Assembly: GCA_019828565.1 (NCBI GenBank)
Contig: JAHDYR010000034.1
Coordinates: 1-64,000 of the forward strand
Reading direction: 5' to 3'
Length of the DNA: 64,000 nucleotides
DNA from: Carpediemonas membranifera BICM
Taxonomy: Eukaryota > Protista > Fornicata
A model generated the notes under the pieces. That model did no database searches, was not told the DNA's origin, and saw only the letters and a list, made by a program, of their open reading frames with translations. Shown here one piece after another: positions 11,374 to 55,371 of the stretch. Position numbers and translations under genes: made by a program. The number at the start of each line of letters is the position of its first letter. The stretch's first letter is position 1.

Positions 11374-14144
11374 TCAGACCAGCTCGAGCTCGCCCCGGGT
11401 CACGTGTGCGAGAACGTCTCCCAGGCGGACGACGACAACCATGGAGGGGCCAACCTCGGTCTCGCGGTCGTCCTCAGCGAGGGACAGGGGACCTACGAGG
11501 TCGATGCCCATCACATCGCGGTCCAGCAGCTTGTGCGACACCAGCACCGGCCTGGGATTGTCGGGGTCGTCGATGCGGGGCGGCAGAGACACGCAGACGT
11601 GCTGGGACAGCATCCGGGCGAGCTTGGCCGCGGCCTCGCGCTGGGACAGGCCGGACGATTCCCCAGGCGCGAGGATGTCGCCCGCCACTCGCCGGGCCGT
11701 ATCGATGGCGTGGGACTTCGCCGTCGCCACCTCGGTCAGGTAGCGCGCCTCTGCCGGCGAGAGCAGCTCGGCCGTCCCAGCCGCCTGGCAGGCCGTCGCG
11801 ACGTAGTACGGCGTCCAGGGATCGGCCTCGATCTTGCGGGCCCGCAGCGCAGCGTACTGGCGGGCAACGAACCGCCAGCGGGCGATGTCGGCGCGTAGCA
11901 CCGCCTGATCCAGCCCACCGACGACGCCCTCGTCGTCCCCGTCGGCCTGTGAGACCTCCGCGACGAGGGAGTGGACCTCCGCGAGGGCATGGGCCCCGAT
12001 GAAGGGCAGCAGCATCTCTGTGGCGGACTCGGCGGCCATGGCGCGCTGCAGCACGAGGAAGGGGTCATAGTTTGGGTCGAACGAGACGTCGCCGCTGGTG
12101 TCCCACTCATGGTCTGGGGCCACGGCGTAGAACACGGGGGCGAGCGATCCCGGGCCGTCTTCGTTGATCAGGGTCGGGGCTTCCCGCCGGGGAACGAACG
12201 TCGCCGCGAACAGGTCGAACAGGGCGCCGTCGGGCCCGTGCGTCTGGCTGACCCTGGCCTGGAGCACCTCGGGGTAGTCGAGGGCGTGCTTGGCCCGGAG
12301 TAGCTCGAACATCTGAGTGCGGATGTCGCACAAACTGCCACCGATGGCCGCCGCCTCGAAGGGGACGATGTTGCTCAGCACGAACTGGGGCCGGTAGACG
12401 TCGACGGCCATGACGGCGGCGGACAGCTTCGTCTTGCGGCGGACGAGCCACACGCGCAGGGCGTTGAGGATCCGCTGCTGGTCGTCCGGCAGGATCGCCA
12501 GGCTGTCCCGCACAGCGAACAGCAGCCGCTGCAGCTCGTAGATGTACCGCGGCACCTTAGCGAACGTGTCGGCGCCGTCCTCCGCGGCCTTGAGGGCGGT
12601 GAGAGCCTGCTCGGTGAACCAGCCCGGGGGGTGGACCGTCACCAGCCCCCGGGCCGCCAGGTCGCACGCAACCCACAGCGGCACCTCCTGCGGCTCGGCG
12701 CCGGTCAGGTCGCACACACGACGGAAGGCAAGGGACATGACATCACGGACGGGGGCGTTATCCACCGCGTCAACACGGACGAGCGCCTCGGGGTCGTGGA
12801 CAGCGTTGCCGCACATGACCTCCCGGACGGCCCTGGCGGTGCAGTCGAGGAAGGGGCGGGCGAGGTCGGACGCGGACCGGTACTCCTGCTCCCTCAGCCC
12901 GAAGGAGACGTCCGGCAGGAAGCACGACGAGTCGTTGATGCCCGTGTACTCCACAGTACGGTCCGTCACGAAGGCGTCCGTGCCCGCCGACGCCGCGAAG
13001 TCGACCTGCTCGGAGGCGCTGTAGGGGTTGTTGAACAGGGCGTCGAACTCGATGGCGAGGTCCCCCACCCCGTCGTCGCCGGCGGCGTCGTCCCACCACC
13101 CCTCAGCCAGGGCCTGCCGGGCACTCCAGACCGTCCGCACGAACTCCTGCTCGGGGGCCGCGATGGCCGACGAGACGGAGGGGTGTGCGGTGAGGGTGGA
13201 GTCCGCCTGCACGACGAGCTCGCCGTCCCAGGTGAGCGCGCTGATTGTGTTCAGCCGCTGGTCGAAGTACACGAGGCCGGCCCGCTTGATGGCCGTGCTG
13301 TAAGCGTTGGCAGTGCGGTAGTCGTTGGAGCGGGGGTCTCCCTCACACGCCCCCTTGATATCCCGCAGTGTCCGTAGCGTCCCGAACATCCGCTCGAGGT
13401 CCTCTACGTCCAGCGGCTGAAGATCGGGGCGGGCCGCCGCCCGAAGGACCTTGCTCAGCGTCCCAGTGATGTTTCGAGTGTCGGTGCGGGTATAGCGCGT
13501 CGACCGGCCCCCCGCCCGCTTGACGGTCTTCGCCTTCTTGCCGCGGCCGGTGTGGTACCCGAGCATTCGGCCACTGTGGGCCGCCTTGTTGAACACCCGG
13601 AGCTCTCCAGTCGTCATGCGCTGGACGAGGTCGTCGTTGGCGTTGTACTCGTTATTCATCGCCTTCATGGTGAACCCGCCGATGCGCCGCTTGAACGTCG
13701 CATCGATGAAGTCAACTATGTCCGCCCGGGATAGCTGCGGCATCTGCCGGGCGAGCTGGCGGTAGGACTCGTAGAACTGCGGCCTGTCGGACAGATCGGC
13801 GTCCTCAGGAGCACGGACAAGCTCGTCCTGGCGTGATACCTTATTGGCGTTCTGACTACGGCGGTTGGTGACGGCGCGGAACTCCTTGGGGATGAGTCGG
13901 TCGGCATCGATCGATTCGGCCACAAAAAGAGGCACAAAGAGGCTAGTGCCTTCCTTAATCTAGCGTAAGCTGTAGGACTTGAGACATACCTGTGTGTCTT
14001 GGTTAGAATAGCGTTGAGCATCGTGAATGTGGCCGGTGGCATCACACGGTTGTCCTGTGTTAGACGACAGTTATATATCATACGCATTCGAACCTCTATG
14101 GGTTCGAAAGAAGCCAAGAGCTCCTCCAAGGTGCCTTGGTTCAT
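11374..14144 (-). CDS. Single-polypeptide GINS complex: Psf3-Psf1-Psf2-Sld5 fusion, 903 aa, exons 14144-14084, 14054-13990, 13959-11374
   Basis: Introns 14083-14055 (GTATGA...CTAACACAG, 29 nt) and 13989-13960 (GTATGT...CTTACGCTAG, 30 nt) join the ATG at 14144 to the 853-aa ORF in frame. Psf3 motifs TLEELLASFEPIEVR, VPLFVA, PQFYE, TFKRR; Psf1 motif KRAGLVYFDQRLNTISALTW; Psf2 motif EVPLWVA...PPGW...RRKTKL; Sld5 motifs RWRFVARQYAALRARKIE, LSPAE, C-terminal VTRGELELV. Confidence 0.88.
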
Positions 14145-14411: not shown

Positions 14412-15662
14412 ATGCAGAAAACCGATGCTGTGAAGGGTACGCCCCTTGACCTTGCTCTACACTCCGTAACTACCATTACAAACGACGATTCCGGTCGGTG
14501 CGTGCTCGTTACACCGATACATGGCGTAGGGTCGCTTCCGACGCCGCAGATGTCTCGGATGACCATCCACCTCCGTATTGACGGCTCCCCGGTATTCGTT
14601 GGAACTGTCGGCGGCGGCATGATGGAGGCCAAGTGCCAGGCGCACGGCGTGGAGATGTTGAAGGACTCCACTCTCCCGGCCGTGTCCGCGCAGACGTACG
14701 AGCTGCGCCACGGGGACATCTCCATATGCGGCGGTACAGCGCGCTTCCTGTTTGAACGCGTCTGCCGCAACGACACTGAGACGAGGGCGGCGCTGCACCG
14801 CATGGCCGCCATCCGCCGGGAACCCTACCTCGTCGGCGTGGAGGTCGTGCGGCTGAGCCCCTACCCCGAGCCGGGCATCCACTCCCGCCGCATGGTGGTG
14901 CTGATCGACCCTCGGACACCAGGTCGCGTGCACTCTGCCGTGGGCAGTGTGGCCGTTGACGACGAGTCGGGCGCGGACGAGATGACGCGGTGGGCCCGGG
15001 AGAAGTGCGTTGCCATGGCTAGCGCGTCGCACATGGAGGTGTGCCGCTACCGGAGCATGGAGTTCTTCTTCTACACGGTCGCACCCCGCCCCACGCTGTT
15101 CATCATGGGCGGCGGTCACGTCGGGCAGGAGGTCGCGCACGTCATGTCCCGCACCGGCTTCATCATCCACGTCTTTGACGACAGGGCTGAGTTCGTCGAC
15201 CCGGCCATCTTCCCCGCGGACACCCACACCCACCTGGTTCACTTCACCCAGAAGGCGTTCGAGGCGGACGATGGCGCCGATAAGGAACGTCTGACCTCGC
15301 TACCTGTCTTCGGCACCCATGAGCTGCGCCGCCAGGCATGCGACCCCCTTCGCTCTTTCGTCGTCATCGTCTCCCGGGGCCACTCCTGCGATACAGACAT
15401 CCTGGACAAGGTCATCAAGGAGACCACGCCGCGGTACACGGGCATGATCGGGTCCCGTTCGAAGATCAAGAAGGTCTTCGCCGAGCTCGTCACCATGGGC
15501 GCCGACCAGGCCGAGCTCGATAGGGTGCATGCCCCCATCGGCCTCCCCATTGGTGGCGATACGCCCGGCGAGATCTCGATCAGCATTGCGGCCGAGATCA
15601 TCCAGGAATGGCGGCAGGGCCACAAGCACTTCACGGACGAGAGCAAGGTGCTGCTTGACTGA
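14412..15662 (+). CDS. xdhC: XdhC/CoxI-family molybdenum-hydroxylase accessory protein
   Basis: GTVGGG, ICGG, LFIMGGGHVG, DDRAEF, SRGHSCD, YTGMIGSRSK, APIGLPIGGDTPGEISISIAAEII. Confidence 0.92.
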   Translation: MQKTDAVKGTPLDLALHSVTTITNDDSGRCVLVTPIHGVGSLPTPQMSRMTIHLRIDGSPVFVGTVGGGMMEAKCQAHGVEMLKDSTLPAVSAQTYELRHGDISICGGTARFLFERVCRNDTETRAALHRMAAIRREPYLVGVEVVRLSPYPEPGIHSRRMVVLIDPRTPGRVHSAVGSVAVDDESGADEMTRWAREKCVAMASASHMEVCRYRSMEFFFYTVAPRPTLFIMGGGHVGQEVAHVMSRTGFIIHVFDDRAEFVDPAIFPADTHTHLVHFTQKAFEADDGADKERLTSLPVFGTHELRRQACDPLRSFVVIVSRGHSCDTDILDKVIKETTPRYTGMIGSRSKIKKVFAELVTMGADQAELDRVHAPIGLPIGGDTPGEISISIAAEIIQEWRQGHKHFTDESKVLLD

Positions 15663-17565: not shown

Positions 17566-19071
17566 ATGGTGAGGGGCGTGGTCGTGGTCAACGACGAGCA
17601 ATCGCAGGCCTATACGCAGCGATTCACTCAAGAATACACACAGCAGTGGTTCCCATCACAGGCTATGCCTAACGAGCCCACTACCACCGCAAACATTCAA
17701 AACTGGATCGGATTAGCTACGGAGAGCTCGTATCTCGTAGACGAGCGCTACGAGGCGTTTATTAACAATATTCCAGCCTCGATAGGAGCGAGAGAGGCTC
17801 TCCTTGGTCTCATTGGGGCGATGCGCTGCGAGGACTCGGTCGTCCCATTCATCGGGGCCGGCGTGTCCTGCGCAGTCGGCTACGAGGGCTGGTGGTCGTT
17901 ACTGAACCGCACAGCAGGCACTCTAGACGCGAAGACGTGTGCTGATGTTCGAGAATCCCTTGCCGCGGACGCGTTCTTGGAGGCCGCGGATAAGCTGGAC
18001 GCCGCTGTGCCCGGTGGGATGTCTGCAGTCATCAAGGAGACCTTTGGACCCAAGCCGGACATGGCCCAGGCGTTGGGTGGGCTGCTTCCGTCCTTCACCG
18101 GCCCTGTGGTGACGACCAACTACGACCCAGTGGTCGAGTCCGTCCTCGGAGTCGGGCCAGCCTGCGTGATCCTGCCGACAACGGGGCAGGACGAAGCTAT
18201 CAGGGCATTGGGGCTGGGGCAGGTGGTGGTCAAGATTCACGGCACGTTCGACGTCCCCTCGAGCCACATCCTGACGAAGCGCTCGTACGACTGCGCGTAC
18301 TTGGCGGATGGGAAGCCCGACTGGACGAAGCCCATACCATGCATCGTGCAGAGTCTCAACGCGTACAGGTCGCTGCTCTTCATCGGCTGCAGCCTCGTCG
18401 CCGACGAGTACCTGACTTGGCTCGCTCCCACCTCAGCCCGCCGCAGCCACTACGCCCTGCTCCCGTACCCCGGGGACGACGCTGTGGAGGCCCGCCTGAG
18501 CTTCCTGCGGGCCCTGAACATCGAGCCCGTGTGGTACCCGTCCGGGGGGGATTGGGGGCGGCACGCATACCTGCAGACGGTCCTCGCATACGCTCTGAGC
18601 GAGGCTGCCGTGGCATCTCCTGAGCCGAGTAGCACACAGGCTGTCTTATCGTTTGACGCACAGAACCTTGTGCGGTCGGCCTGGGCGCACAGCATATTCT
18701 CCCGACTCCAACCGGCGTTCGACCTGTACTCGCAGGCCCTGTCCGTTATCGTCGACGAGAAGGCGGTCCCAGATCTCGAGCTCTTCTCCAAGTGCAAGCT
18801 CGGTCTCGCGGCATCCGCCAAGGCACTCGGCCACCGAGATCAGGCCAGGGCCCTCGTCACCGAGCTCCTCACCGTCGACACCTTGGCCCGGACCACCGTG
18901 GTGGAGGCGTGTTGGCTGTTGGCGGAGCTGTCGTACCCGGACAGGTGCGAGGAGGCCCTCCATGCTCTGTACGGGGCGATGGCCAGCATCACGGCAGAGA
19001 CCTGGGGGTCCGAGGCGAGGGCTGTCGGCAAGCTGGTAGAGAAGCTTAGATTGACCGTAAATGAATGCTAG
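17566..19071 (+). CDS. SIR2-like (SIR2_2 / defence-type NADase) domain + C-terminal TPR-like helical region
   Basis: VVPFIGAGVS, VVTTNYD, VKIHG, SLLFIGCSL; no sirtuin Zn-ribbon; C-terminal helices AFDLYSQAL, LGLAASAKALGHRDQARAL. Alternative start ATG at 17665. Confidence 0.85.
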   Translation: MVRGVVVVNDEQSQAYTQRFTQEYTQQWFPSQAMPNEPTTTANIQNWIGLATESSYLVDERYEAFINNIPASIGAREALLGLIGAMRCEDSVVPFIGAGVSCAVGYEGWWSLLNRTAGTLDAKTCADVRESLAADAFLEAADKLDAAVPGGMSAVIKETFGPKPDMAQALGGLLPSFTGPVVTTNYDPVVESVLGVGPACVILPTTGQDEAIRALGLGQVVVKIHGTFDVPSSHILTKRSYDCAYLADGKPDWTKPIPCIVQSLNAYRSLLFIGCSLVADEYLTWLAPTSARRSHYALLPYPGDDAVEARLSFLRALNIEPVWYPSGGDWGRHAYLQTVLAYALSEAAVASPEPSSTQAVLSFDAQNLVRSAWAHSIFSRLQPAFDLYSQALSVIVDEKAVPDLELFSKCKLGLAASAKALGHRDQARALVTELLTVDTLARTTVVEACWLLAELSYPDRCEEALHALYGAMASITAETWGSEARAVGKLVEKLRLTVNEC

Positions 19072-38843: not shown

Positions 38844-39166
38844 GAGACAACTTAAGATAAATACCGTCATTTTGCGCGAAACGCCGCCTGGGACCGGCGG
38901 CTGCATTTCCGGGCCTGCTGCAGTTTGTTTTCCCGTGGGGGCGAGAACAATTCGCGGATTCGACTCAACGACACATTGTGTCGAAGTCACGCTCACTTCT
39001 TCGTGAAAGCTTCAATGTTCGTCTCCGAGCGCCCACCGAGGCAGAAACCGGTGCCAGAGCATTCCGCGCCCCCATAGCTCCTCGCCAGCGCGGCCTGGCG
39101 CTTCAAGCAGCGGAATTTTTGGCCCGAAATCTTGCCGTCGGCGCAATCCTCCCTCACACAGTCAAA

Positions 39167-40519
39167 ATGCGTGAATGCATCTCTATCCACATTGGTCAGG
39201 CCGGTGTTCAGATCGGTAACTCCTGCTGGGAGCTCTACTGCCTCGAGCACGGCATCCAGCCCGACGGCCAGATGCCCTCTGACAAGACCATCGGTGGCGG
39301 TGACGACGCCTTTAACACCTTCTTCTCTGAGACTGGTGCCGGCAAGCACGTCCCCCGCGCCGTCTTCGTCGATCTCGAGCCCACCGTTGTCGATGAGGTC
39401 CGCTCTGGCGTCTACCGCCAGCTGTTCCACCCCGAGCAGCTCATCTCCGGCAAGGAGGATGCTGCCAACAACTACGCTCGTGGCCACTACACCATCGGCA
39501 AGGAGCTCGTCGACCTCGTCCTCGACCGCATCCGTAAGCTCGCTGACAACTGCACTGGCCTCCAGGGCTTCCTGATCTTCCACTCCTTCGGTGGTGGCAC
39601 TGGCTCTGGCTTCGGCTCCCTCCTCCTCGAGCGCCTCTCTGTCGACTACGGCAAGAAGTCCAAGCTCGAGTTCGCTGTCTACCCCTCCCCCCAGGTCGCT
39701 ACCGCTGTTGTCGAGCCCTACAACACCGTCCTCGCCGCTCACTCCATGCTCGAGCACTCCGACTGCGCCTTCATGGTTGACAACGAGGCCATGTACGACA
39801 TCTGCCGCCGCAACCTTGACATCGATCGCCCCACCTACACCAACCTCAACCGCCTGATCGCCCAGTGCATCTCCTCGATCACCGCCTCCCTCCGTTTCGA
39901 CGGTGCCCTCAACGTTGATCTCACTGAGTTCCAGACCAACCTTGTCCCCTACCCCCGTATCCACTTCCCCCTCTGCTCCTACAGCCCCATCATCTCTGCT
40001 GAGAAGGCCTACCACGAGCAGCTCTCCGTTTCCGAGCTCACCAACGCTGTATTCGAGCCCGCTAACTCCATGGTCAAGTGCGATCCCCGCCACGGCAAGT
40101 ACATGGCCTGCTGTCTCATGTACCGCGGTGATGTCGTCCCCAAGGACGTCAACGCCTCCATCGCTACCATCAAGACCAAGCGCACCATCCAGTTCGTTGA
40201 CTGGTGCCCCACTGGCTTCAAGGTTGGCATCAACTACCAGCCTCCCACCGTCGTCCCCGGCGGCGACCTCGCCAAGGTCCAGCGCTCTTGCTTGATGATC
40301 TCCAACACCACCGCCATCGCTGAGGTCTGGTCCCGCATGGACCACAAGTTCGACCTCATGTACGCCAAGCGTGCCTTCGTCCACTGGTACGTCGGTGAGG
40401 GTATGGAGGAGGGTGAGTTCTCTGAGGCCCGTGAGGATATCGCTGCCCTCGAGAAGGATTACGAGGAGATCGGCGCCGACACTGCCGAGGAGGAGCAGGA
40501 AGAGGAGTTCGAGTACTAA
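39167..40519 (+). CDS. TUBA: Alpha-tubulin, copy 1
   Basis: MRECISIH, K40 in [15 protein letters not shown]-terminal EEFEY. Confidence 0.99.
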
Positions 40520-40613
40520 GCTTCATGTAAACCCCGCCCTTGAATCCTGATGCCCGCGTTTACTTCTCTGAATGGAGCCTCTAAAAGTAACAATAACCGA
40601 AATTTATCTGAGC

Positions 40614-42244
40614 TCACTCGTCGCCGACGAGCGAGACGTCGACACCGACGTCTGCGATCGCGTCATCCATCATATCCCTGTAGCGGAGGTACGTGCTGCG
40701 TGTGAACGTCACATACTGCACAGCACCGTTCGTGCGGGCCGTGAAGGTCGGCTCGAACGTGCTCTCCGTGCCCTCGATCGCCTCCAGGCCGAGCACGTTC
40801 CAGGGCTTCAGTGCGGCGACAAAACCGTCGCGGCCGAAGCGGACATTGACCTCGCCCTGCAGGACGATCGTGAAGTGGCAGTTGGGCTTCCCGAGCGTGT
40901 AGAGCTCGACGTCGGCGGCGATGCTCTCGGGGTCGTCGGTCATCTCCGACAAATCCAGTCGGGTCACCGTAGTGTGGTTCTCGCTCAGCCGCTGGCACCC
41001 GGCGACCGTGAGCTTCTTCGTGTCGACCACCATGCCCGACCGCACGAACGACTCGAGCGGAGTGGCTGAGAACTGGTTGGGCCCGAAGAGGTCGGGGTAC
41101 GTGTCGCGGAGGAAGGCCGCAGTCGCCTTCGCCTGGGCATGAGTCAGGTTGAAGTCGGAGCGGCGGTGGGCGAAGGCCAGCTGGCGCAGGTCCTCGTGGC
41201 GTGTCCGCTCAATGGCGTTGTAGTGGACCATGCCCATGTCGTCGAGCTCGACCTTGTCCGTCTCGTCGGCGATCTCCGTGTTCAGCAGGGCCTCGATGAC
41301 ATCCTCCATCGTCACGATGCCGCGGAGCACGTACTGAGGGTCTGCATCGCCGTCAGGGTCGACGACGACGTCCTTGACGACGGCGATGTGGGCCTGGCCG
41401 GACTTGAACGTGTTCATCAGCTCCGTGAGGCGCTCGTCGCTGTGCGTCTCGATCGGGGTGCGGCCGATGATGCCCATGAGGTTGCGGAGGGGGATGGCGT
41501 GCTCGGGCGACAGGATGATGAGGTCCTTGACGACAATGATGCCCACGATGTTCGTCCGGGCGCCGCTGTACACGGGGATGCGGCTGTGGCCCGTCTCCAT
41601 CAGCTGGCACATGGTGCGGGTGTCGAGGACAGAGTCGATGCTCATCATAAAGACGTCCTTGAGCTGGGTCATCACCATTGACACCGTCTTCGCCTGGAAG
41701 TCGATAGCCGAGGACAGCATCTTGACCTCGGGCGCGGTGAAGTCCGACGTCTTGCTGGGGAGGGTGGAGTGGTAGTCGAGGAGCTGCTTCAGCTCGGACC
41801 GGGAGTACACGGTCCCGATCTCCTCGCCCAGGAGGAAGTTCAGACAGAGGGCCAGGGGTAGCGTGATGGGCAGGAGGCAGATGAGGCAGATCCACACAGC
41901 GGGGGTGGCTACGGCGCCCACGTAGAGGCCGTATCGGTTGCATATAGCCTGAGGAATGATCTCACCAAAGAGCGTGATCAGGGCGGTGGCAATGAGGGTG
42001 CCGATGCCGTCACCGAAGAGTCTCGCGCTGATGACAGCAAGGACGGCGTTGACGAGGACGTTGGAGAGGAGGAGGGTGCAGAGCAGGAGGTTGCCCCGCT
42101 TCCGGAGCGGGAGGACAACCTTGGCGGCCTTCTTCTGTTTGTCCTTACCAGCATCGATAAGAACCTTCAGAGAGTGTGTATCGAGGCCAAGAAGACCAAG
42201 GTTCAGGCCGCTGAACAACCCAGAACAGAATAGAAGGAAAACGA
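40614..42244 (-). pseudogene. CNNM (DUF21-CBS-CBS-cNMP-like) Mg2+ transporter, 5'-truncated copy
   Basis: FSGLNLGL, LLCTLLL, FGEIIPQA, GHSRIPVY, GIVTMEDVIE; lacks the first ~26 codons including the ATG. Confidence 0.85.
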
Positions 42245-51889: not shown

Positions 51890-53600
51890 ATGAATACAGA
51901 TGAACTTATTGATATAGCAAAAGACTGGGGAAGTTTCTTGGGGTACTACGCCCTTCAAGCTTTTCTCTTCGTTTTCCTTCTATTCTGTTCTGGGTTGTTC
52001 AGCGGCCTGAACCTTGGTCTTCTTGGCCTCGATACACTCTCTCTGAAGGTTCTTATCGATGCTGGTAAGGACAAACAGAAGAAGGCCGCCAAGGTTGTCC
52101 TCCCGCTCCGGAAGCGGGGCAACCTCCTGCTCTGCACCCTCCTCCTCTCCAACGTCCTCGTCAACGCCGTCCTTGCTGTCATCAGCGCGAGACTCTTCGG
52201 TGACGGCATCGGCACCCTCATTGCCACCGCCCTGATCACGCTCTTTGGTGAGATCATTCCTCAGGCTATATGCAACCGATACGGCCTCTACGTGGGCGCC
52301 GTAGCCACCCCCGCTGTGTGGATCTGCCTCATCTGCCTCCTGCCCATCACGCTACCCCCTGGCCCTCTGTCTGAACTTCCTCCTGGGCGAGGAGATCGGG
52401 ACCGTGTACTCCCGGTCCGAGCTGAAGCAGCTCCTCGACTACCACTCCACCCTCCCCAGCAAGACGTCGGACTTCACCGCGCCCGAGGTCAAGATGCTGT
52501 CCTCGGCTATCGACTTCCAGGCGAAGACGGTGTCAATGGTGATGACCCAGCTCAAGGACGTCTTTATGATGAGCATCGACTCTGTCCTCGACACCCGCAC
52601 CATGTGCCAGCTGATGGAGACGGGCCACAGCCGCATCCCCGTGTACAGCGGCGCCCGGACGAACATCGTGGGCATCATTGTCGTCAAGGACCTCATCATC
52701 CTGTCGCCCGAGCACGCCATCCCCCTCCGCAACCTCATGGGCATCATCGGCCGCACCCCGATCGAGACGCACAGCGACGAGCGCCTCACGGAGCTGATGA
52801 ACACGTTCAAGTCCGGCCAGGCCCACATCGCCGTCGTCAAGGACGTCGTCGTCGACCCTGACGGCGATGCAGACCCTCAGTACGTGCTCCGCGGCATCGT
52901 GACGATGGAGGATGTCATCGAGGCCCTGCTGAACACGGAGATCGCCGACGAGACGGACAAGGTCGAGCTCGACGACATGGGCATGGTCCACTACAACGCC
53001 ATTGAGCGGACACGCCACGAGGACCTGCGCCAGCTGGCCTTCGCCCACCGCCGCTCCGACTTCAACCTGACTCATGCCCAGGCGAAGGCGACTGCGGCCT
53101 TCCTCCGCGACACGTACCCCGACCTCTTCGGGCCCAACCAGTTCTCAGCCACTCCGCTCGAGTCGTTCGTGCGGTCGGGCATGGTGGTCGACACGAAGAA
53201 GCTCACGGTCGCCGGGTGCCAGCGGCTGAGCGAGAACCACACTACGGTGACCCGACTGGATTTGTCGGAGATGACCGACGACCCCGAGAGCATCGCCGCC
53301 GACGTCGAGCTCTACACGCTCGGGAAGCCCAACTGCCACTTCACGATCGTCCTGCAGGGCGAGGTCAATGTCCGCTTCGGCCGCGACGGTTTTGTCGCCG
53401 CACTGAAGCCCTGGAACGTGCTCGGCCTGGAGGCGATCGAGGGCACGGAGAGCACGTTCGAGCCGACCTTCACGGCCCGCACGAACGGTGCTGTGCAGTA
53501 TGTGACGTTCACACGCAGCACGTACCTCCGCTACAGGGATATGATGGATGACGCGATCGCAGACGTCGGTGTCGACGTCTCGCTCGTCGGCGACGAGTGA
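51890..53600 (+). CDS. CNNM Mg2+ transporter with full 5' end but +1 C in the run at 52355-52359 (frameshift or sequencing error)
   Basis: MNTDELID... start; CTACCCCCTGG versus CTACCCCTGG in the other copy. Confidence 0.88.
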
Positions 53601-53694
53601 GCTCAGATAAATTTCGGTTATTGTTACTTTTAGAGGCTCCATTCAGAGAAGTAAACGCGGGCATCAGGATTCAAGGGCGGGGTTTACATGAAGC

Positions 53695-55047
53695 TTAGTA
53701 CTCGAACTCCTCTTCCTGCTCCTCCTCGGCAGTGTCGGCGCCGATCTCCTCGTAATCCTTCTCGAGGGCAGCGATATCCTCACGGGCCTCAGAGAACTCA
53801 CCCTCCTCCATACCCTCACCGACGTACCAGTGGACGAAGGCACGCTTGGCGTACATGAGGTCGAACTTGTGGTCCATGCGGGACCAGACCTCAGCGATGG
53901 CGGTGGTGTTGGAGATCATCAAGCAAGAGCGCTGGACCTTGGCGAGGTCGCCGCCGGGGACGACGGTGGGAGGCTGGTAGTTGATGCCAACCTTGAAGCC
54001 AGTGGGGCACCAGTCAACGAACTGGATGGTGCGCTTGGTCTTGATGGTAGCGATGGAGGCGTTGACGTCCTTGGGGACGACATCACCGCGGTACATGAGA
54101 CAGCAGGCCATGTACTTGCCGTGGCGGGGATCGCACTTGACCATGGAGTTAGCGGGCTCGAATACAGCGTTGGTGAGCTCGGAAACGGAGAGCTGCTCGT
54201 GGTAGGCCTTCTCAGCAGAGATGATGGGGCTGTAGGAGCAGAGGGGGAAGTGGATACGGGGGTAGGGGACAAGGTTGGTCTGGAACTCAGTGAGATCAAC
54301 GTTGAGGGCACCGTCGAAACGGAGGGAGGCGGTGATCGAGGAGATGCACTGGGCGATCAGGCGGTTGAGGTTGGTGTAGGTGGGGCGATCGATGTCAAGG
54401 TTGCGGCGGCAGATGTCGTACATGGCCTCGTTGTCAACCATGAAGGCGCAGTCGGAGTGCTCGAGCATGGAGTGAGCGGCGAGGACGGTGTTGTAGGGCT
54501 CGACAACAGCGGTAGCGACCTGGGGGGAGGGGTAGACAGCGAACTCGAGCTTGGACTTCTTGCCGTAGTCGACAGAGAGGCGCTCGAGGAGGAGGGAGCC
54601 GAAGCCAGAGCCAGTGCCACCACCGAAGGAGTGGAAGATCAGGAAGCCCTGGAGGCCAGTGCAGTTGTCAGCGAGCTTACGGATGCGGTCGAGGACGAGG
54701 TCGACGAGCTCCTTGCCGATGGTGTAGTGGCCACGAGCGTAGTTGTTGGCAGCATCCTCCTTGCCGGAGATGAGCTGCTCGGGGTGGAACAGCTGGCGGT
54801 AGACGCCAGAGCGGACCTCATCGACAACGGTGGGCTCGAGATCGACGAAGACGGCGCGGGGGACGTGCTTGCCGGCACCAGTCTCAGAGAAGAAGGTGTT
54901 AAAGGCGTCGTCGCCGCCACCGATGGTCTTGTCAGAGGGCATCTGGCCGTCGGGCTGGATGCCGTGCTCGAGGCAGTAGAGCTCCCAGCAGGAGTTACCG
55001 ATCTGAACACCGGCCTGACCAATGTGGATAGAGATGCATTCACGCAT
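53695..55047 (-). CDS. TUBA: Alpha-tubulin, copy 2 (protein identical to copy 1)
   Basis: Same translation; one synonymous difference noticed. Confidence 0.99.
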
Positions 55048-55371
55048 TTTGACTGTGTGAGGGAGGATTGCGCCGACGGCAAGATTTCGGGCCAAAAATT
55101 CCGCTGCTTGAAGCGCCAGGCCGCGCTGGCGAGGAGCTATGGGGGCGCGGAATGCTCTGGCACCGGTTTCTGCCTCGGTGGGCGCTCGGAGACGAACATT
55201 GAAGCTTTCACGAAGAAGTGAGCGTGACTTCGACACAATGTGTCGTTGAGTCGAATCCGCGAATTGTTCTCGCCCCCCACGGGAAAACAAACTGCAGCAG
55301 GCCCGGAAATGCAGCCGCCGGTCCCAGGCGGCGTTTCGCGCAAAATGACGGTATTTATCTTAAGTTGTCTC

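Follow-up and report, generated by a model that had tools for sequence, protein, structure and literature searches.

The Locus, Its Splicing and Its Transcript

The gene described here lies on the minus strand of contig JAHDYR010000034.1 of the free-living protist Carpediemonas membranifera BICM (assembly GCA_019828565.1), in a stretch of 64,000 nucleotides (positions 1 to 64,000) that we call the window. The evidence supports a single spliced open reading frame (ORF) that carries the four GINS subunits in the order Psf3-Psf1-Psf2-Sld5, with Psf1 weakly assigned. The parts of the gene and of its transcript are as follows.

14084..14144 (-): exon 1, opening with the first ATG (14144) and encoding the beginning of the Psf3 B-domain; supported by a shuffle fit and by the transcript contig to 14122
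14055..14083 (-): intron 1, 29 nt, GTATGA...CTAAC..AG with a branch-like CTAAC; missing from the transcript contig
13990..14054 (-): exon 2, 65 nt; encodes the central part of the Psf3 B-domain
13960..13989 (-): intron 2, 30 nt, GTATGT...CTTAC..AG; missing from the transcript contig
11374..13959 (-): exon 3, 861 codons and TGA
11332..14122 (no strand): span of the transcript contig, 2,732 nt, spliced

Exon 3 is a stop-free minus-strand frame of 861 residues, extending from 13959 as far as the TGA at 11376-11374, and its GC content at third codon positions (GC3) is mostly 0.8-0.96, with 0.64 over the initial 50 codons. It is identical to the public protein KAG9392667.1 ("GINS complex protein PSF3", C. 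membranifera, 884 aa, JAHDYR010000034.1). Removal of both introns (29 + 30 nt) gives 2712 nt, or 903 residues without an internal stop, and alternative GT-AG pairs also preserve the frame by arithmetic (a script count of frame and length). A spliced contig of 2,732 nt from the public runs X1 and X2 covers 11332-14122 with no mismatch. Against the genome it has two gaps, of exactly 30 nt (at 13960) and 29 nt (at 14054), as the lengths require (2791 - 59 = 2732). Since the introns are missing from it, the contig derives from RNA; it is an assembled sequence rather than a single molecule and has no strand information, and the two runs, which gave an identical contig and depth, count as a single data set. 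All three block junctions are crossed by it unbroken. An earlier, sequence-only reading of this DNA had proposed that two micro-introns join the ATG at 14144 to the long ORF to give 903 residues, and had named RNA as the check on both introns and on one continuous transcript; the frame count and a contig lacking exactly those two introns bear it out.

The public model takes the second Met (14087) as its start, leaving off 19 residues at the N-terminus, a stretch that resembles the Psf3 N-terminus. The start at 14144 is better, because exon 1 by itself fits the Psf3 N-terminus (an equally good match arose in 2 of 2000 shuffles) and the contig extends to 14122. Searches were run with the exons separately and with the public 884-residue protein.

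Assignment of the Four Blocks

GINS subunits are of AB type (Psf1, Sld5) or BA type (Psf2, Psf3), and Psf1-Psf3 and Sld5-Psf2 make upper-lower contacts (PMC3114041). The chain divides accordingly.

13558..14144 (-): block 1, Psf3/GINS3 (BA type), about residues 1-176 of the 903-residue model; from a purpose-built profile and a tree
13474..13557 (-): basic linker, 10 K/R per about 30 residues, similar to the basic tail at the C-terminus of free-standing Psf3
13087..13473 (-): block 2A, Psf1/GINS1 helical A-domain; the weakest assignment
12859..13086 (-): block 2B, acidic loop and candidate diverged Psf1 B-domain; weak pairwise p-values
12274..12843 (-): block 3, Psf2/GINS2 (BA type); on the Psf2 side of the tree split
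12088..12273 (-): acidic linker between Psf2 and Sld5, about 62 residues here and about 35 in a relative
11374..12087 (-): block 4, Sld5/GINS4 (AB type); its C-terminal B-domain runs to the stop

Block 1 was assigned with a profile built from 12 metagenome Psf3 proteins that were gathered by DNA pattern, all 12 of which match PSF3_N. Aligned by hhalign, this profile pairs 123 columns with residues 18-153 of KAG9392667.1 (probability 88.6, E 2.7e-6), and it scores 21.5 bits on block 1 as against a maximum of 7.1 for shuffles. The Psf3 hidden Markov model (HMM) gives block 1 20.4 bits and the Psf2 HMM -1.4 bits. In the tree, a 100/100 split separates block 1, which falls with Psf3 on a long branch, from block 3, which falls with Psf2. 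Block 1 is thus a Psf3 subunit, B then A domain, separate from Psf2, although Pfam, phmmer against PDB, the ESM Atlas and the homologue word search returned no match to it and a metagenome scan gave no relatives. DNA-pattern matches in viral contigs proved to be a phage tail protein or frames that arose by chance; those in prokaryotic genomes, in bacterial and archaeal contigs and untranslated, were taken as chance. RKR tails are present in the alignment of free Psf3 proteins, and because the first linker is basic like these tails, its sequence suggests that it is the native Psf3 tail, reused.

A full-length homologue search with the 884-residue protein returned only KAG9392667.1 itself. An exhaustive search of homologues found one long relative, a protein of 655 residues in GCA_002919055.1 (E 6.6e-24), which is collinear with residues 208-884 of KAG9392667.1 (E 8e-33) and so corresponds to Psf1-Psf2-Sld5. 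Block 3 has the B-then-A order of Psf2. Block 4 has the A-then-B order of Sld5: a two-species profile of it matches the Sld5 chain 8ouw_D of PDB at E 7.8e-4, ESM Atlas structures superpose on residues 641-884 with TM values of 0.74-0.75, and the orthologue matches SLD5_C at E 0.01. The linker between blocks 3 and 4 is unconserved between the two species (p=0.6).

Block 2 requires more caution. The alternative that fares best, though an unlikely one, is that Psf3, Psf2 and Sld5 are real while block 2 is a spacer that is decayed or not Psf1, or else that the function of the Psf1 B-domain in contacting Cdc45 and Dpb2 has been lost and the complex is atypical. It draws on the Pfam, PDB and word searches, which gave no Psf1-specific match for block 2, and PSF1_C was found neither in the block nor in its orthologue; block 2B, moreover, matches the corresponding region of the orthologue weakly (p=0.04). 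The inventory of Salas-Leiva et al. (PMC8516963, Supplementary Data 2) also scores Dpb2/PolE2, which partners the Psf1 B-domain, as absent from both Carpediemonas species. Against this, the orthologue's Psf1 block spans 86 of the 102 positions of PF05916 at E 0.005, in a structural search of 48,161 chains the sole row among the top 50 to cover block 2 belongs to a human GINS chain, whose alignment starts at its residue 1, and block length and the A-then-B layout agree with Psf1. The helix pattern of block 2 parallels that of block 4, and the orthologue's region matching 2B compares with the C. membranifera Sld5 B-domain at p=0.006. We therefore assign block 2 to Psf1 weakly, and partly by elimination. 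In the helicase composed of Cdc45, MCM and GINS (CMG), the Psf1 B-domain, which is normally mobile, packs on Cdc45 and binds Dpb2 (PMC5223209). It is tempting to speculate that the divergence of the Psf1 B-region is tied to the absence of Dpb2.

All motifs quoted in the sequence-only reading are found in the translation. Its order of four GINS blocks holds for Psf3, Psf2 and Sld5 by profile, tree and structure, and only weakly for Psf1; likewise, its proposed profile check of each quarter succeeded for Psf3 (with our own profile), Psf2 and Sld5 and gave no Psf1-specific match for block 2.

A Proposed Single-Chain GINS

The usual four polypeptides from four genes are replaced at this locus by one ORF and one transcript. 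We propose, with a probability of roughly 0.8, that this one gene specifies the complete GINS heterotetramer in a single chain of about 99 kDa, folded intramolecularly and stepwise in origin. The layout would be Psf3-linker-Psf1-Psf2-linker-Sld5 (BA-AB-BA-AB). The fusion order leaves the Psf3/Psf1 and Psf2/Sld5 contact pairs adjacent, as had been noted from the sequence and in agreement with the published upper-lower contacts (PMC3114041). The four units may fold within one chain into the usual compact trapezoid, Psf3:Psf1 and Psf2:Sld5 forming the upper-lower pairs and the former terminal tails serving as linkers. With Cdc45, this single-chain GINS would bind MCM2-7 to give the CMG helicase. 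A single promoter and one chain would fix the 1:1:1:1 stoichiometry, and the short Psf1-Psf2 junction would tether the Psf1 B-domain. We infer that the chain folds and works as an uncleaved GINS tetramer. If so, CMG assembly and the coupling to Pol epsilon may follow a rewired route, to judge from the tethered, diverged Psf1 B-domain and the seeming lack of Dpb2. Single-sequence AF2 models were of low confidence (pTM 0.25-0.30) and a Foldseek search from the model was uninformative; a shallow hhalign comparison for internal paralogy among the blocks gave no signal.

Alternatively, the gene might encode a polyprotein, translated as one chain and then cut at the linkers to yield an ordinary four-chain GINS. 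The linkers are indeed long, charged and unconserved, and the Psf1 A-B linker of human GINS is protease-sensitive (PMC5223209). However, the chain contains no 2A-like NPGP motif, the linkers of the two species share no conserved cleavage signal, the Psf1-to-Psf2 junction is very short, at about 5-10 residues, and cleavage seems unneeded given that the fused Sld5-Psf1 of Plasmodium can be modelled into GINS. We regard this as improbable, somewhat more so than a chain with a spurious Psf1 block. A still slimmer chance attaches to a domain-swapped arrangement, in which the linkers prevent closure by one chain and at least two chains assemble in trans, for example as a covalently linked double GINS. 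Free human GINS partly forms double tetramers, which speaks for this arrangement; yet two linkers are 30-60 residues long, the shorter Psf2-Sld5 linker suffices in the relative, and parsimony points to intramolecular folding. Finally, a merger of separate neighbouring genes by assembly error or gene calling was rejected as scarcely credible, even if the RNA contig may share a project with the genome, given 861 stop-free codons with high GC3 through the junctions, a spliced contig identical to the genome and the same block order in an independent genome.

Fusion History and the Published Gene Inventory

The gene for the 655-residue relative is unannotated, a single exon on the plus strand at locus positions 1859-3826 of contig PPCM01001892.1, flanked by Hat1 and by an SSRP1/Pob3 gene. 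The possibility that a Psf3 exon lies upstream was examined and rejected: only 540 nt lie between it and the divergent Hat1 gene, with no Psf3 HMM match. The published inventory lists one PSF2 and two PSF3 as separate genes in C. frisia (PMC8516963, Supplementary Data 2). GCA_002919055.1 is likely C. frisia, because that column (PSF2 plus separate PSF3, no PSF1 or SLD5) is what a triple fusion would be expected to produce. In Giardia, Kipferlia, Monocercomonoides and Trichomonas, each of the four GINS subunits has its own gene (PMC8516963, Supplementary Data 2). Since these outgroups hold four separate genes, the simplest history has the fusion built up in steps within the Carpediemonas lineage, starting with Psf1-Psf2-Sld5 and adding Psf3 N-terminally in C. 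membranifera. The 1-1-1-1, 3+1 and 4 states would then record the stepwise fusion of an obligate complex inside one group.

For C. membranifera itself the inventory gives a single PSF3 (J8273_5925), without PSF1, PSF2 or PSF4; from its name, we infer that KAG9392667.1 is J8273_5925. The reported GINS losses in this species look like an annotation miss, and three of them would be removed. The sequence-only reading's conditional guess of a Carpediemonas-like host is correct. That best-hit searches would score one subunit and call the others lost had been anticipated from the sequence, and the genome paper does list PSF3 only. The stand-alone genes that were to be sought in related fornicates are present as four separate genes in Giardia and Kipferlia, and none further is reported in C. 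membranifera.

Carpediemonas is cited as a eukaryote without canonical replication initiation, and the genus is reported as the only eukaryotes lacking both the origin recognition complex (ORC) and Cdc6. GINS depletion has been discussed as a mark of unstable replisomes (PMC8516963, supplement B2). Cdc45, MCM2-7 and Mcm10 are listed as present in C. membranifera (Supplementary Data 2). If all four GINS subunits are present as well, the elongation helicase would lack no part, leaving loading and firing (ORC, Cdc6, Cdt1, Dpb2) as what is still to be explained. For Spironucleus and Trepomonas the inventory counts no more than 1-2 GINS subunits (PMC8516963, Supplementary Data 2); these absences and the Carpediemonas Dpb2 loss may be hidden by fusion or divergence, or may be real co-loss.

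Surroundings in the Window

Retrotransposon-like remnants at 9101-11332, with RNase H/integrase-like and tyrosine-recombinase-like frames, adjoin the 3' end of the GINS contig at 11332. Upstream, a divergent XdhC-like gene (PF13478; 14412-15662, plus strand) begins 270 nt from the GINS start, and beyond it lies a gene with a SIR2_2 domain (17566-19071, plus strand). A very deep contig of 122 nt maps to 14421-14500. Identical translated stretches on opposite strands at 38993-41681 and 52305-55221 suggest a large inverted duplication.

Comparison with Known GINS Systems

The open literature, subscription journals being mostly outside this scope, yielded neither a GINS fusion of three or four subunits nor any reference to the present one. 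GINS fusion as such has precedent in Plasmodium berghei, whose Sld5-Psf1 fusion models into a normal GINS (bioRxiv 10.1101/2023.12.25.572958). The sequence-only reading's view of a single-chain GINS not known from any other eukaryote therefore stands for the four-way fusion, no other having been found, and is narrowed by the Plasmodium fusion and by the triple fusion in the relative. We think it probable, a little less so than the single chain itself, that this is the first natural single-chain eukaryotic GINS, fused stepwise (three-way in the sister species, four-way here) and acting as one uncleaved CMG component. Such a natural one-gene GINS would be a template for single-chain GINS reagents.

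Canonical eukaryotic GINS (PDB 2E9X/2EHO/2Q9Q) likewise comprises four paralogous subunits, two AB and two BA, totalling about 100 kDa, and its Cdc45 and MCM partners are encoded in C. membranifera too. The difference is that four genes and chains are replaced by one gene and a 903-residue chain, with very diverged Psf1 and Psf3. In P. berghei, as here, GINS subunits share one polypeptide and were recognised only via structural annotation, but that fusion joins two subunits, Sld5 then Psf1 going by the paper's name for it, and leaves Psf2 and Psf3 separate and duplicated, whereas all four are joined here with Sld5 last. The two fusions would thus be independent. An ESM Atlas cluster of 102 members, 408 aa long and mostly from Apicomplexa, is a double-length GINS family; it is probably the apicomplexan Sld5-Psf1 fusion, which would hence be wider than Plasmodium. 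The 655-residue relative shares the collinear Psf1-Psf2-Sld5 order (25% identity over 721 columns) and differs in being a single exon without the Psf3 block. Archaeal GINS (Gins51/Gins23 alpha2beta2 or homotetramer; PMC3114041) also builds a tetramer from fewer than four genes, but it does so by repeating identical subunits, whereas in C. membranifera four paralogues are fused.
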